A DNA stretch of 63,358 nucleotides from Paramoeba atlantica. Taxonomy: Eukaryota > Protista > Discosea. The notes beneath the pieces are model-generated. The model did not search any database and was not told where the DNA came from. It worked only from the letters and a program-made list of their open reading frames with translations. Of the stretch, positions 3,395 through 20,853 are shown one piece after another. Position 1 is the first letter of the stretch. Each line of letters opens with the position of its first letter. The translations under genes were made by a program, and so were the position numbers. The stretch covers positions 1-63,358 of the forward strand of contig CDRNVI010000166.1 in assembly GCA_977017575.1 (NCBI GenBank), written 5' to 3'.

Positions 3395-4075
3395 TCTGCA
3401 CTCCGCGGCGGATGCAGCCCTTGCTCAAGAGCAGATGGAGCAATACGAATTTTCCCGAATTCAGGTTGATGAAACCTTTATAGGGAAACGGAAATATCAG
3501 CGGGGGAGGCGACAGCGCAAACGGGGGTGGTGGTTTGCGACAGTTACCGAGATTCGAGGTCAAGAAATGGGAAGAACCCATAGCTAGTGAAACGAAGAGA
3601 TACGGAAACTCTTCATAACTTTATTCTTCCTCACTTGACAAGTGCGAGGGCTGTCGTGGTTAGCGACTGTTGGGGGGCGTACACCACTTTGGGTGACTTT
3701 TGTCGCCACCACGCTGTGAATCACAGCGTGGAGTTTGTGAACTCCCAAGGGTACCACACGAACACCGCTGAAGGGTCACATCGCATCATAAAGGACTGGG
3801 TGCGGAAACAGCACTACAATTTTGGTGCCATGTCCTTGGAATTGATGCGAAATGTGGCCCTTCAGTGTGTGAAGTTGGGGGACGTCCACAACGGGCGAGA
3901 GACCGCGTGGCAAGTTCGCATGGCAAACCTTTTCACGTGCTTCCTGGAATATTACGGAAGTGATGTAGATGATTTTGAGGACAGCGTCAGTTTGAGTAGT
4001 TGTCCGTCAGATTACATGAGCGAAGATGATTTCGTTCCAAGTGAGACTGACAGTGTTACAATGGAAGACAATTAA
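3395..4075 (+). pseudogene. Merlin (IS1595/ISXO2-like DDE) transposase, frameshifted and 5'-truncated
   Basis: IQVDETFIGKRKYQRGRR (about 3460-3510), 1-nt frameshift near 3580, then VVSDCWGAY, HAVNHS, HTNTAEG; acidic C-terminal tail. Confidence 0.85.
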
Positions 4076-4367: not shown

Positions 4368-4890
4368 TGGGACATAATAATATTTTTCGGCGACCCGCGC
4401 GCTCCAGCGCGCGGGTCGCGCACTGAGAACCTGTGTTTACCCCTTCCGCAGGATTGTCGCTCAAAATATGTATATGGATCAGTCAAAAACGCTTCGATGA
4501 AGACAAACAGAAAAAACAGTGAAAGTTGACTTGCGTGCTGCGTGGCACAGCTCCTAGCAAGCGATAAGGGGGGGCTTGTTCTAGGGAGGTAACATCTCCT
4601 CGGAGATATAATGCCTAAAAAAATCAAAAATCAAACGGTCGATATGGGTTGAGTCGCGTGCTTTTCGTCGTCCTTCCCCGATAAATGACAATTTCTTCCG
4701 GATGTATCAGCACGAAGTTCACTCTTGTTAGCTGCGTAACCTCTGTCCACCTGGCTGCCGCCTTCCAACAAATTAGTATCGCCATCCATTCCGACGCTGT
4801 AACTCGACAAGCTAGCTTCTTTAGTAAATAAGGCGTGACGGGCAGCATCTGCCTTTGTGGCTCCAGTGCGCCTTGGGCTTGAAGAGCTCT

Positions 4891-5351
4891 AGGAGGCCTT
4901 GGGCTTGAAGAGCTCCAGGAGCGGTGCGGGCGTACTTGGTAGACGATGGGCCTTATAACCTGCAGGTTGTGGGTTCGATTCCCGCTATCGACAAAACTCG
5001 CAACCTGGCTGCCTCACTACAAAGGGAGAGCGATCAGGAGTGCCTTCAAGGCCCAACCAAACCCTGCTCCCCTGGAGGACCGACCCGGAACCGCCGGGCT
5101 GAACCAGGCTCCAGCGCACCCGCTAAATTGCGAGCTGCTTACGCAAAGGAGGCTTGAGACACAGCCTACACGATGCAACGGGGTTGGACGCCCGTCCTGG
5201 GAGCTACGGTTGGGTAGCCGTTCTCGGGCCGCAAGGCGTCGAGTGCCGTCCGGGAAGGGGGTAGCAAGACAATGAAGGTCAGTGACCTGAGACTCTACCC
5301 TAACGGTTGGCGCTGCAGATCCCTCCGTGTCTTCTTCTTCTCTTCTTCTTC
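4891..5351 (+). mobile_element. tRNA-derived SINE-like retroposon with (CTT)n tail
   Basis: 11-bp TSD TGAAGAGCTCT at 4880-4890 and 5352-5362; tRNA-like head 4920-4993; about 340-nt GC-rich body; tail CTTCTTCTTCTCTTCTTCTTC 5331-5351. Confidence 0.75.
4920..4993 (+). pseudogene. tRNA-like sequence (Ile-TAT/Met-like), head of the SINE; not a functional tRNA
   Basis: Perfect T-arm GTGGG-TTCGATT-CCCGC (box B GGTTCGATTCC), box-A-like GGCGTACTTGG, anticodon-loop-like CTTATAA; acceptor stem 5/7 paired, anticodon stem degenerate. Confidence 0.7.
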
Positions 5352-5773
5352 TGAAGAGCTCTTGAGTACAATTTTAGCGGGGTCACTTCGTACGACATCA
5401 GGTTGAGTACGGACTGCAGGTTTTTCACATAACTGTGACGTGTCGAGGTGTGACGTGTCGCTGCTTTCGACAAAATTCTTCCATCCTCGTCCATAGTCGA
5501 CTTCTCGAAAGCCAGGTCCCTTGCGTCCACATAGGCTGTACAGCCGTTACCACTATTCGCCCCGTCGCTGTGGTTGGGTTTCATGAATTTTGGAGGTCAG
5601 ACTGTGCATAGTCGAGGTGTTTTGCCGAATCGTGTTGTTGGATGGACGAATTTGTCGCTGCACGGCACGATGCATCGTGAGTTCTTGTCTCGAAGAATGA
5701 TAGGACGTGTTTAATAAAATCACCCGCCGTCGTTTCAACGGCTGGGCACAGTATTCGGGGTGGGGGCCATTTC

Positions 5774-6851
5774 CTAGTAAGGCCGTCTTTCGCCGCGAGC
5801 ACCACGCATCGTCGTTGCCGCGGTGCTGGTCACGGTGCTGCTTGCCACCCCTCGCCCGAAACCCGATCGATTCAAGGCGGGGCAGTCGGCCCGAAAATGT
5901 CCAGTTTGCCGACAGTTATAACAGACTCGTTGACGGAATGTCCGTCCGCGCGTGCGATTTAGCTGTGTAGCACGCAAGTGCTCTTCAATCATGGCTTGAC
6001 CGTATTTGTCTCCCGGGTTCTCCTCCTTGTACAGCTTTTGATGAGCACGTTCAACTTCCACTCCGGCGGCGGCTCAGTAGTGGCTGCGAAGCTCTTCTAC
6101 AACTATCACTGCCATGTTTAGAAAATGACCATCCCGCCAGTCCTGCCACTCACGGGCAGAATAAATTCATTCGATCAAGAGCTTGAAAAGTCGTTCGCGT
6201 TGCGGTGGGGGATTAAATCGGACTCCTAACTGGGGTGCATCCCGCAGCTCCCTAATCAAATCTCTTGCTTTAAACTCATCGCCAGCATTCAACCAAGGTC
6301 CCCACGTAGTCGGATCGTACGGAGAGAAATTCTTTGGGTCATCGGGAACCACAGCGCGTAGGTCCATCTCTGCCTGCTGAGCCGCGAGGGAACCGTCTTC
6401 AGTACCGTCCGGCATACAGCTATCAACCTGCACGATCTCAAGGGCAAAATATCGAATTCGCGGATGAGGAAAAGGATAGCTTTTGTTAGGTTCGTCATCC
6501 CACTTTGCAACCAACTCATCATTGTTTCGTTTTTTTGGGGAACTTAAAAGAGACTGACCCTTCGACGACCTGCTGAAAATCATCCCCCTGCTCCGCCCAC
6601 ACAGCCTTGATCCTAACCTTTCGCTTCGCTCGCAAAATATCAACTATTCGAGCTTGGAACTCTCCTCTTTCGACATCAGTCATTAAACGGGTCTCGCGGT
6701 CTTCCACCTGCTCGGGATTCAGCGTTCCATCCCTGCGCTCGCGTCGTGGCCCTCGACGTCGAGATGCAGGAGGATCAGGAGCGACGGGAGGCGGACTTTC
6801 AGCTCGTGTCATCGACACCGCCCGTCGCACCGCATCAACGATACCAGACAA
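5774..6851 (-). pseudogene. gag-like ORF (frameshifted) with CCHC zinc knuckle, upstream of the tyrosine recombinase
   Basis: Successive ORF pieces 6519..6851, 6167..6643 and 5774..6061; CYNCRQTGHFRADC knuckle. Confidence 0.7.
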
Positions 6852-7080
6852 CTCGTAGCACTTAGCAAAACTTGAAGACTACTATCAAAATATATAAAAT
6901 ATTTATTTCCATGTATCACTATAGAAACTATTCATAAATAAAACGTACAATGCCCGTCGGCCAATTTTCATCACTATAAAGCCCCTCCTAAATTTCCTTC
7001 CGTGAACTTCTACTGTATCTGTGCCCATGTTGAATAATACGAGATAGACTTGACTTTGGAGACTAGAAGATTATTTGACT

Positions 7081-7410
7081 TCAAAGGCTTATGCCACCTA
7101 GCCATTTTTCACCCTGTATGTGGTTCCGCAATTGCGATACGATAGTGTAAGCCGCAAACTTTTCATTTTCCAATTGAAAAGCTTCACGTATAACTTTTGG
7201 GTCAGAATCCGCTCGTTTTGCAAGGGCTTTGATCAAGACCTTGGTATCTTCATGTAACATTCCACAATCCGTTAAAGCGATGCAACGAAAATACTCTGGT
7301 TCTAATCCCTTCTCTACAACGTATTTCCGATGTTTCTTTCTACGGCACTCTCTAACAGGGCTTTGCTGGTCTGTTTTTGGTAACTGCTGCATAGTGTGTG
7401 GACAACTGTG
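7081..7410 (-). pseudogene. C-terminal (RLE-tail) fragment of a CRE-like non-LTR element
   Basis: ECRRKKHRKY...FRCIALTDCGMLHEDTKVLIKALA resembles the K..(H/Y)...F.PLAFTVFG..GKRTVLLL tail of the CRE copy at about 52200. Confidence 0.55.
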
Positions 7411-7494
7411 ACATCATATAGAACTCCAATATCTGGATTCAATATAAATTTATATATATATATATATATTTATATCCTATTATTATATAATATA

Positions 7495-8833
7495 AACCCC
7501 TGGCCAAAATAAGGCACCCCCCTCTAAAAATTCGATGCTTTGTTTGTTTGAGCTAATTTCAATGGCATTTTGCAGATCTCAGTTCGGGATTTATGTCATC
7601 CCACACTTGGTCACTAGTCCTATAGCTATTTATAAAGTGGAAACTATTTACCACTTTTTTACCTTTTCGCCACCTAGTTCGACGCAGGCCTTCAGTCTAC
7701 GATCGAAGCTTAAGATGGTATCATTTATCATCTCAGTAGGTAAAGAACTCCATGTGTTTAGAATACACCTTTGCAGTTCGGAAACTGTAGATGGTAGCTT
7801 TTCATTTACGTCTTGTTGTACCATTGACCATATGTTTTCAATGGGAGAAAGATCGGGAGAATTTGGGGGCCAATTTTTTAGTAGATTAATTTTTCGTTTG
7901 TTCAGGTAATTTATGGTGGCCTTGGCCGTATGAGCGGTGGCACCATCTTGTTGAAATATTCTTTTGCGGGGGAAATAAACATGTTTTAGTGTGTCTATGT
8001 ATGTTTCGTGGGTAATAGAGGTCCTGCTGGATAAAATTTTTAAGCATCTCCAGTTAATTCCTATAGCACCCCACACCTGACACTTAGGCGCCCAGCGCAC
8101 CTTTAGTCTCTTTGCAGGGGTCTCTCCTTTTTTTACCCACATTTTCATTCGATTATCGTTTGTATCAAACACCTTCTCATCTGAGAATATCAATTTCGAT
8201 GTGTCCTCTTTGTAATTTAAAGAAAACTGTACGCGTTTTTCTTTTTGTACAGCGGTGAGCCCTTGTGAAATTGGGCGTGGCCTGTATTGATGCCCTGCTT
8301 GCCTCAAATCTCGACGAACAGTTCGAGGGCTTGCAGTAACACCCTTTCTGCACAAAACAACAGAAATACGCTTTGAACTGTTGTACTTTGGCACCCCTGC
8401 CGCATCTTTCTTAGAAATAATGGTTTCAATCCTTTTTTTACGAGACTTTATTTTTTTTTTCTGTGGGGATTTCTTTAGGCTTTTTTTCGTCTCAATTTTG
8501 GGGTGATCACGGAGGTATTTTCGAATGTATTTCACGCTTACATTCAATTCACGTGCTATTCGTTTCTTTGGGATGCCATCTTGAAACCTTAAAAGCATGA
8601 GTTCCTTCCCCAGGGGGCTGAGGCCACCTTTCGGAGGCCTGCGGAATGATTTTTTCATAAATCGACCCTAATGTTAAAGTGGTAAAATATTTTTTTATTT
8701 TTTTATTTTTCATGAGCTAAAAACAGCGGGAACGTACAGATCTCAAAATTTTGAACGAAAACATGGTATGATAACCCTGCCATACCCCCTCATGCAAAAA
8801 ATAAGGGGGGTGCCTTATTGGTGGCCAGGGGTT
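7495..8833 (-). mobile_element. Full-length Tc1/IS630-like element, AACCCC-TIR family
   Basis: TIRs AACCCCTGGCCAAAATAAGGCACCCCCCT / AGGGGGGTGCCTTATTGGTGGCCAGGGGTT, TA on both sides, intact transposase. Confidence 0.92.
7648..8658 (-). CDS. Intact Tc1-like transposase, 336 aa, D-x77-D-x35-E
   Basis: HTH (IARELNVS), IFSDEK, FQQDGATAH, WPPNSPDLSPIENIW; spacings counted by hand. Confidence 0.92.
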   Translation of the reverse strand: MKKSFRRPPKGGLSPLGKELMLLRFQDGIPKKRIARELNVSVKYIRKYLRDHPKIETKKSLKKSPQKKKIKSRKKRIETIISKKDAAGVPKYNSSKRISVVLCRKGVTASPRTVRRDLRQAGHQYRPRPISQGLTAVQKEKRVQFSLNYKEDTSKLIFSDEKVFDTNDNRMKMWVKKGETPAKRLKVRWAPKCQVWGAIGINWRCLKILSSRTSITHETYIDTLKHVYFPRKRIFQQDGATAHTAKATINYLNKRKINLLKNWPPNSPDLSPIENIWSMVQQDVNEKLPSTVSELQRCILNTWSSLPTEMINDTILSFDRRLKACVELGGEKVKKW

Positions 8834-19624: not shown

Positions 19625-20320
19625 TTAATTTTAATTACCATTATTAGTGTTTTGACGGTAATATAATAGAAGAAAAAAATATAAAAGGGGGGCCCGGTGG
19701 TCCAAAGCTGAAAAACAATTTGAAAAAAATGGGCGGTCTAGGGGGGTCCATGGGGGGGACATACGTCGCGAATATTTTTTTCGAATTTTTTGCTTTTCAA
19801 AATCGAGCGCAGGGAAGTGGTAGAGTATGCCGCGGCAATTAAATTTATATTCCACCCCTCCACCTGGGGGTGACCCCCCCTGATACGCGCAGGATGGGTC
19901 CAACCAAGTTCGAAATTTCCGAAATTTTTTGGGTGACCCAAAAAAAATTTGACCCAAATTAACATTGTCTAACAAGTACTTTTTACTTTTTTTAAAAAAA
20001 GTAAAAATATATTTTTTCCAAAATCGACTACTGAAACGTATTTTAAGAGTTTTGGACCTCAGCTACCATTCTGCAACGTTTTTTTCGGAAAATTCGCCTC
20101 CTACCCCTACTGGTAAGGCATTAAAAACGTCCCAAATTTTGGAGTAAAATTTCGCTATTTTCACCTAAAAATTGGTCTTTTCACCCAAAAAAGGAGTTTG
20201 TTCATGATATTTCTCTTTTACTCGCTTTATTAAACGCGGAGGTAGTTTTCAACACGAAGCGCGCAGCATGAGTGCCTTCTAGGTTGAAAACAAACACCGC
20301 GTTTAACGAAGCGACAAAAA
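19625..20320 (-). repeat. Copy of a composite dispersed repeat (hairpin module + GGTAAGGCAT module + GGACCCCCC module)
   Basis: Reverse-complement homolog of 54330-55090; partial copies at 42585-42880 and 43410-44140. Confidence 0.7.
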
Positions 20321-20853
20321 AAATGAAACCAGTCTGGAAAGCGAGGGCCATATCTAGAAAAACACAAACTACTCTATTCGAAGCACATGTTATGTCTATT
20401 CTTATGTACGAATGCTGTACATGGAATCTGTCACCGACACAGTTCAGGAGGATCAACCAGACATACGTAAAGATGGTCAGGTATGTGCTAAAATTACCTA
20501 ATGTAACTATTATACATAAGCCCAGCGACCCAAAAGGAGAAAACCAGAAACTATACATTTCCTATGAAGAATCTCTCAAGGTGACACACACGCCTACAAT
20601 GCAAGAAAGATCGGATACCCGAATACTATTTTACGCGGGGCATGTGGCACGCGTGGGCCCCGAAAGAATCCCAAGCCGACTACTATTCGGAAGCTGCGAC
20701 GGGCAAAAAAGGGGACGTAAACAACAATCCATGCATGAAACAATCGCCCAAGCAGCTGAGAGAGCAGAATTTCAGCCTTTCTCATGGAAGCTTCAAAGTC
20801 AAAATAGAAAGATATGGAATAAAGCAATATACGAATACCGCCAAACTAAGTAA
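20320..20853 (+). pseudogene. 3' end of an RTE-clade LINE ORF (5'-truncated)
   Basis: W..R.IS.KT...LFEAHVMSILMYECCTW; RILFYAGHVARVGPERIPSRLLFG...KRGRK...W...SQNRKIW. Confidence 0.8.

Follow-up and report, generated by a model that had tools for sequence, protein, structure and literature searches.

A probable tRNA-type SINE with a (CTT)n tail, nested in a tyrosine-recombinase-type retroelement remnant

Introduction

Four clades of retrotransposons, CRE, INGI, TATE and VIPER, have been described from trypanosomatids and Bodo saltans (PMC12278014), and DNA transposons were first reported from kinetoplastids in 2021 (PMC8101967). The short retroposons of trypanosomatids are otherwise derivatives of LINEs or of VIPER. 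RIME, NARTc and SIDER are non-autonomous kinetoplastid retroposons that are thought to be moved by LINEs; they are truncated or deleted LINEs themselves, with LINE 5' signatures and A-rich tails (PMC2323293). SIRE of Trypanosoma cruzi, a repeat of ~430 bp that is physically linked with the tyrosine-recombinase retroelement VIPER, is made of VIPER's own ends (PMC6681497). A different class, tRNA-derived SINEs with microsatellite tails, is mobilised by RTE-clade LINEs (Nishiyama and Ohshima, 2018; PMC6007223). The plant Au-like SINEs and the Sauria SINEs that go with Bov-B belong here; they are short and non-coding, carry a tRNA head with A and B boxes, end in a simple repeat at the 3' side and show 5' truncation (PMC6007223). 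Our literature search found no paper that joins tRNA-derived SINEs with kinetoplastids.

We analysed a stretch of 63,358 nt (the window; positions 1 to 63,358 of contig CDRNVI010000166.1, assembly GCA_977017575.1, Paramoeba atlantica) in which a reading made without database searches, here called the sequence-only reading, had placed a tRNA-headed, (CTT)n-tailed SINE that splits a tyrosine-recombinase gene at 4880–5362. The observation as a whole was confirmed, and the interpretation built on it is partly supported. We consider it highly probable that the unit at 4921–5351 belongs to a young family of tRNA-type SINEs, presumably transcribed by Pol III and mobilised by a LINE through target-primed reverse transcription, and that it is nested in a recombinase retroelement. 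The element resembles the Au-like and Sauria SINEs in being short and non-coding, in its simple-repeat 3' end and in the 5' truncation of some copies, and its tRNA-like head with putative A and B boxes would be a further likeness. With SIRE it has in common the length and the physical link to a tyrosine-recombinase retroelement, but it shares nothing with its host element and is distinguished by its tRNA-like head, (CTT)n tail and target-site duplications (TSDs). By description it is also set apart from RIME, NARTc and SIDER, which lack such a head and tail.

The 3' end of a kinetoplastid-type spliced leader followed by GTA occurs at 181 sites in the genome (control, 0); the pattern, taken from general knowledge, speaks to the lineage and not to the species. 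The sites are scattered over many contigs and do not form one tandem array. As far as the literature search reached, the SINE is new for its lineage, as had been suggested, and an ordinary kind of element. A young SINE of the Pol III type, as predicted here, in a spliced-leader-using relative would mean that the classical SINE/LINE partnership exists in the lineage, and its copies could serve as presence/absence markers and as a natural reporter of LINE activity.

Results and discussion

The insertion and its empty sites

On the forward strand, TGAAGAGCTCT occurs as the 5' TSD at 4880–4890 and again as the 3' TSD at 5352–5362. The two perfect 11-bp copies enclose 461 bp (4891–5351), exactly as the sequence-only reading had it. 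The flank 4635–4890 has four paralogues elsewhere in the same genome at 96% identity, and in these copies of the host element (L033–L036; L and C numbers are our handles for loci and contigs) the position that corresponds to 5352 follows directly, TGAAGAGCTCT occurs once and the insert is missing. The four empty sites thus establish that the 461 bp were truly inserted and that 11 bp of target were duplicated, with one base ambiguous at the TSD boundary, as the (CTT)n tail could end in T too. The mobile unit proper is 4921–5351, ~430 bp, the family having its 5' start at ~4921 and not at 4891.

A near-identical duplicate of the SINE locus lies on contig C21 (L002) and agrees with it in TSD and junction duplication. 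The window locus and L002 are one insertion event that is present twice, through segmental duplication or because they are two haplotypes. The window contig (1–63,358) as such resembles a near-identical second copy of part of C21 (163–226 kb), and would be a haplotig or the product of a large segmental duplication; the C21 region carries both the SINE locus and the window's RTE fragment (20272–20853), at offsets that differ by ~2.9 kb.

Family size, age and arrays

The 45.7-Mb assembly was searched with 436 bases from 4916 onwards, which gave 213 candidates; the 40 that were scored are 93–100% identical to the query. A 30-nt head motif has 124 sites genome-wide and a 26-nt tail motif 102, with no site for either reversed-pattern control, and at least 148 tails were recovered with a covariance model built on the terminal 104 nt. 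Taken together, the head-motif, tail-motif and covariance-model counts put the family at roughly 125–150 copies. Alignment of 32 copies with their flanks gave a common 5' boundary at window 4921 and a 3' boundary that consists of a CCGTGT block followed by (CTT)n. The proposed multi-copy family with tRNA-like head, simple-repeat tail, shared ends and variable TSDs (see below) is supported. Divergence from the majority consensus was 1.2–2.5% in 20 sampled copies, and the window copy, at 3.7%, is the most diverged of the sampled set. Judged by these alignments, the family is young. Exact-word scans of metagenome and genome collections for relatives outside this genome gave 0 matches.

Many copies have identical flanks and form arrays, tandem or segmental, on C40, C61, C71, C65, C87 and C12, and 32 weaker tail matches on C105 and C10 belong to a tandem array in which they are spaced 3.95 kb apart. 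Since array copies have identical flanks, independent retropositions are fewer than the copy count. These arrays would also suit an explanation by duplication only, in which a genomic segment, for instance a tRNA pseudogene with neighbouring sequence, was spread as a repeat and the TSD arose by chance. Such spreading leaves unexplained that at least 21 copies with distinct flanks start and end at the same element bases, that 13 TSDs of at least 8 bp stand far above mismatched controls and that the window copy has empty sites; we give it hardly any credence.

Two arrays differ in composition. Eight SINE heads with a period of 3.5–6.1 kb lie at C87:19.8–53.2 kb, and five with a period of 6.5 kb at C12:136.5–162.5 kb, in both cases with no tail motif nearby among the sites listed. 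They may be a tail-less or tail-swapped variant that is carried in tandem repeats.

Marks of target-primed reverse transcription

Distinct 5' flanks were found in 21 of the 31 copies inspected, and in 13 of these 21 a TSD of at least 8 bp (up to 14) abuts the tail. When 5' and 3' flanks were paired across different copies as a control, the median was 5 and the 95th percentile 7. L028, in which ~70 bp of flank are repeated on both sides of the element, stands outside the TSD count because it offered the script no 5' anchor. The CTT tail that had been reported is present at 5331–5351 (forward strand) as (CTT)3-CT-(CTT)3-C, and its length differs between copies. One copy is truncated at the 5' side and retains element positions 224–431 (L073), and a 55-nt tail-only copy is found in L011, L018 and L024. 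Variable TSDs, a simple-repeat tail of variable length, 5'-truncated copies and empty sites together identify insertion by target-primed reverse transcription.

By inspection, T is the first base of most clear TSDs, immediately behind a tail whose last base is C, as would fit a nicked target that pairs with the CUU repeat. A link between the tail repeat and the start of the TSD is known for RTE-related retroposons, and RTE-mobilised SINEs likewise have TSDs of ~8–14 bp that mostly start with T after a C-ending tail (PMC6007223). The stretch of T upstream of the TSDs described for them (PMC6007223) was not evident to the eye in the few copies inspected here.

The truncated SINE at L073:2300–2640 (C30:605300–605640) is flanked on each side by ~45-nt reverse complements, that is, by an inverted target duplication and not by a direct TSD. 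The same arrangement is present in duplicate at C30:582.6 kb.

Re-copied flank at the 5' junction

Between the 5' TSD and the element start lies a filler on the forward strand (4891–4920) that is made of AGGAG, a 21-nt re-copy of the flank 4870–4890 with one mismatch, and AGGA, so that the order across the junction is flank, AGGAG, re-copied flank, AGGA, element. The filler is foreign to the family except at the duplicate locus L002. Described differently, a 26-nt unit (4870–4895) is repeated in tandem at 4896–4921 with one mismatch and spans the junction. The sequence-only reading had noticed the re-copy but gave it as 19 bp; it measures 20–21 nt and is part of the 26-bp tandem duplication.

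Flank re-copying is a recurring feature of the SINE family and is seen in other copies as well. In L006, L025 and L027 the 5' TSD is separated from the start of the element by imperfect re-copies of the upstream flank, 13–21 nt long, and shorter ones are found at the 5' junctions of L004 and L005; at the start of L017, the first 18 nt of the element itself are partially copied in tandem. We propose that slippage or template switching, while the 5' end of the cDNA joins the upstream target, would leave such a re-copied flank. In the window copy, a slip back onto upstream target DNA could have produced a few untemplated bases and the 26-bp tandem duplication. Similar junction duplications occur with R2 elements. 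The recurrence gives a small mechanistic clue to how insertions get completed.

The tRNA-like head

A tRNA-like head, in tRNA register from the first nucleotide, occupies 4921–4994 on the forward strand. It has an A-box-like motif, GGGCGTAGTTGG, at ~4928–4940 (element positions 8–19), a perfect T arm, GTGGG/TTCGATT/CCCGC, at 4969–4985 and, within the T arm, a perfect B box, GGTTCGATTCC, at 4971–4981; seven bases of 3' acceptor and a discriminator A follow at 4986–4993. The T arm and B box, both noted as perfect by the sequence-only reading, are thus in place. The sequence corresponding to the anticodon loop is CTTACAA in the family and CTTATAA in the window copy, with TAC and TAT, respectively, in the anticodon register, that of the variable loop is AGGTT, and pairing has been lost from the D and anticodon stems. 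Checking head and body against tRNA and Rfam models gave a divided result: the head is tRNA-like, but on the Rfam tRNA model, with its gathering score of 29, the window copy reaches 14 bits and L003, which is close to the consensus, 22.3 bits, and the body has no Rfam match. ARAGORN was silent on the head at default settings and reported 'tRNA-?(Val)' at a lowered threshold only.

No parent tRNA emerged from a partial set of 24 distinct tRNAs from 30 loci, where the best match was 49 of 74 bases. A genome-wide search with the T-arm pattern returned a sole gene without the SINE's downstream bases, a tRNA-Pro(CGG) that is otherwise unlike the head. The element has no TTTT anywhere inside, which is compatible with Pol III read-through.

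Genomes with a spliced leader of the kinetoplastid type are transcribed by Pol II in long polycistrons, and tRNA-like structures set an end of some long non-coding RNAs. The same locus could accordingly be read as a LINE-dependent short retroposon that is not driven by Pol III and lies within Pol II polycistrons, with the tRNA-like head as an RNA-processing signal for one end. Besides the spliced leader in this genome, the window head speaks for such a reading in that it scores 15.5 bits on the mascRNA model against 14 bits on the tRNA model and could adopt a tRNA-like fold that has no D arm, with GUUGGUA paired to UAUCGAC. If RNase P cut such a fold, however, the first ~15 nt would be lost, whereas full-length copies start at nucleotide 1, and RNase Z cleavage would separate head from body. 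Pol III transcription fits with A- and B-box-like motifs that stand at the canonical distance and with the lack of T4 runs. We therefore regard RNA processing from polycistrons as improbable and retain Pol III transcription as the preferred reading.

A further pairing involves the head. The 5' half of the T arm with its preceding bases, CAGGTTGTGGGT (4963–4974), can form 12 bp with ACTCGCAACCTG (4996–5007). The pairing, which would exclude the T arm, appears in all predicted folds and is family-invariant, with no covariation.

Body, 3' hairpin and RNA folding

On the forward strand, the head is followed by a GC-rich body (4995–5241) without an ORF of note, an Rfam match or a TTTT run, a long imperfect hairpin (5242–5314) and a unique 3'-terminal block (5315–5330) that ends in CCGTGT, as defined by the alignment of copies and the tail-motif search. 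The whole element of ~430 bp has chance ORFs only. Nothing in the window reached the gathering score in Rfam, and the matches to the body were at chance level.

The sequence-only reading had listed stems in the body and proposed that it may be a functional RNA fold. The stems are present, but shuffled sequences with the same dinucleotide content fold equally well. For the window copy, the minimum free energy of −162 kcal/mol compares with a shuffle mean of −160.2 (z −0.33), and for L019 the values are −168.7 and −162.1 (z −1.0). At 62% G+C and ~430 nt, body stems of the kind listed arise by chance. An alignment fold of 21 copies gave a covariation term of +0.75, with one pair changed on both sides, in two related copies; as the mean column identity is 96%, such an alignment has almost no covariation power either way. 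With energies that equal those of shuffles and a lack of covariation, read with that little power, a functional fold of the body is not supported.

The hairpin at 5242–5314 was found in single-sequence and alignment folds. It pairs GGGTAG (5259–5264) with CTACCC (5295–5300) around AGGTC..GACCT and is invariant across copies, without covariation. The palindrome AGGTCA-G-TGACCT that had been singled out at its centre is present in the window copy but is private to it and L006, the family having AGGTC-GGT-GACCT. Of the predicted structures, we retain this 3' hairpin alone as a possible signal by which the reverse transcriptase recognises the RNA.

Search for a partner LINE

The sequence-only reading had suggested a partnership with an RTE LINE near 20320. 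The fragment in question (20272–20853) is RTE-like, with a match to DUF6451 only, and neither it nor its 3' flank shares anything with the SINE tail. A BLAST search of the SINE against the whole window gave chance words of 11–21 nt only and no partner LINE. We then sampled the 2-kb stretches downstream of 20 matches to DUF6451 (RTE thumb), which represent about eight RTE-like LINE families. Their 3' ends are (TAT)n, (GTTG)n, (ACA)n, (GGATT)n or A-rich of the AATC type, and none of the eight or so families has a CTT tail or a SINE-like 3' end.

Pattern and covariance-model scans agreed with this comparison of LINE 3' ends. The 15-nt sequence CCGTGT(CTT)3 has 76 sites in the genome, nearly all at SINE-type tails already listed, and the covariance model found almost only known SINE tails and a few low-scoring matches (C12, C58, C11 and C24). 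No SINE tail was seen by eye to lie downstream of, and on the same strand as, any of the 150 reverse-transcriptase (RT) matches listed. Two candidates for a LINE end were set aside: a 55-nt 'tail B', which has 89% identity with the SINE tail across 63 nt, is confined to one segmentally duplicated region, and a match downstream of an RT domain on C30 is a 5'-truncated SINE.

All RTE-like LINEs sampled end in microsatellites, so a microsatellite-tailed SINE fits the LINE biology of this genome. The presence of such LINEs is a further likeness to the RTE-mobilised SINEs (PMC6007223), from which the present case differs in that no LINE with a common 3' end was found and in its kinetoplastid-like host. 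An RTE-like partner LINE for the SINE is plausible.

A heavily 5'-truncated RTE-like LINE is represented in the window by its 109-nt 3' end (4526–4634, forward strand), which has an A-rich tail of the (AAAAATC) type. It abuts the exact point at which the host element is cut off and is unrelated to the SINE. The same sequence lies ~0.3 kb downstream of LINE ORFs in L074 and L075, and the genome has about 70 further copies of this LINE tail.

A model for the insertion

We propose that the decayed tRNA-like head, through its internal A and B boxes, would direct Pol III to initiate at base 1, and that the polymerase would read through the ~430-nt element, which has no T4 terminator. A LINE endonuclease/reverse transcriptase would then nick the target and use the (CTT)n terminus of the RNA for priming, with probable help from the 3' hairpin, and copying of the RNA into the nick would yield the (CTT)n tail and a target duplication of 8–14 bp. 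The landing site was the recombinase ORF of a retroelement copy in which that ORF follows a Gag-like one, and the whole locus was later duplicated, or is present as a second haplotype, on C21.

A more far-reaching proposal combines three points: that this is the first tRNA-type SINE lineage described for Kinetoplastea, that its LINE recognises little beyond (CTT)n and that the 5'-junction re-copies are a family-wide signature. The second point derives from the fact that no LINE with the SINE 3' sequence was found. We put the combination forward tentatively and think it doubtful as a whole; were it true, the 5'-junction signature would report how second-strand synthesis is primed in these protists.

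The host element

The SINE lies in a defective retroelement copy on the reverse strand (4635–7012), whose paralogues are 95–100% identical over the aligned segments. On that strand the copy has a Gag-like ORF with a zf-CCHC domain (5774–6061; Pfam, E 1e-7) and the remnant of a tyrosine-recombinase ORF (5584–5363 and 4890–4624) that is split by the SINE. The sequence-only reading had stated that excision restores a recombinase frame of 162 codons. The arithmetic is right, as removal of the insert joins 5363–5584 to 4624–4890 in one frame of 489 nt (162 codons and a stop), but what is restored is a frameshifted, 3'-truncated remnant and not a working gene. A length difference of 46 nt at 5449/5458 switches the frame relative to intact relatives, and the host copy, cut off at 4635, does not reach the HxxR and Tyr motifs and keeps the first Arg only. 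It may have been defective when the SINE arrived or be dead by now. A search for a twister ribozyme on the 5' side of the host found none at 6700–7500.

Relatives of the recombinase ORF number 446 candidates, with open frames of ~385–395 aa. Pfam and PDB sequence searches with them gave no matches. RWTE, HSIKRG, KH and LLRY are invariant in six subfamilies, and an AlphaFold model of an intact relative (mean pLDDT 63.5) best matched Cre, Tre, the Tn1549 integrase and Xer (E down to 4e-7). The invariant motifs and these matches of a predicted, Cre/Xer-like structure support the assignment of the host ORF relatives, by fold and catalytic residues, as tyrosine recombinases, the identity already given to the split ORF. 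In relatives of the host, Gag and recombinase are followed by an ORF with RT-like motifs that were read by eye; Pfam found nothing in this partial ORF. The order Gag, recombinase, RT-like ORF is a likeness to VIPER and TATE (PMC6681497).

With such a host, the SINE might also be a non-autonomous derivative of the tyrosine-recombinase retroelement, by analogy with SIRE and VIPER (PMC6681497): it sits inside an element of this kind, and SIRE, which is built from VIPER ends, has the same length. A SIRE-like repeat would have termini identical to those of an autonomous recombinase element, whereas the host paralogues have no similarity to the insert. Four of them show no trace of the 430 bp, and a BLAST search with the host region gave nothing SINE-like in them. 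Moreover, many unrelated flanks, TSDs, simple-repeat tails and 5' truncation point to target-primed reverse transcription and not to integration by a recombinase. We consider derivation from the host very improbable; the locus is an ordinary nested insertion of a SINE among dead transposons, and nothing points to a function for the cell.

Two further observations concern the host relatives and their surroundings. In the five subfamilies (among L095–L099 and L036) whose locus spans the region, a second frame on the same strand is open across the whole 1.1-kb recombinase ORF and runs on into the RT-like region, for 545–787 aa, with several frames running off the locus. Some 385 stop-free codons in the alternative frame are far from chance and suggest a conserved overlapping reading frame. 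Beside the retroelement pile, a 162-aa ORF on the forward strand at 3435–4075 has an IS1595/Merlin-type DDE transposase domain (PF12762, E 2.6e-8) and marks the remnant of a Merlin-like DNA transposon.
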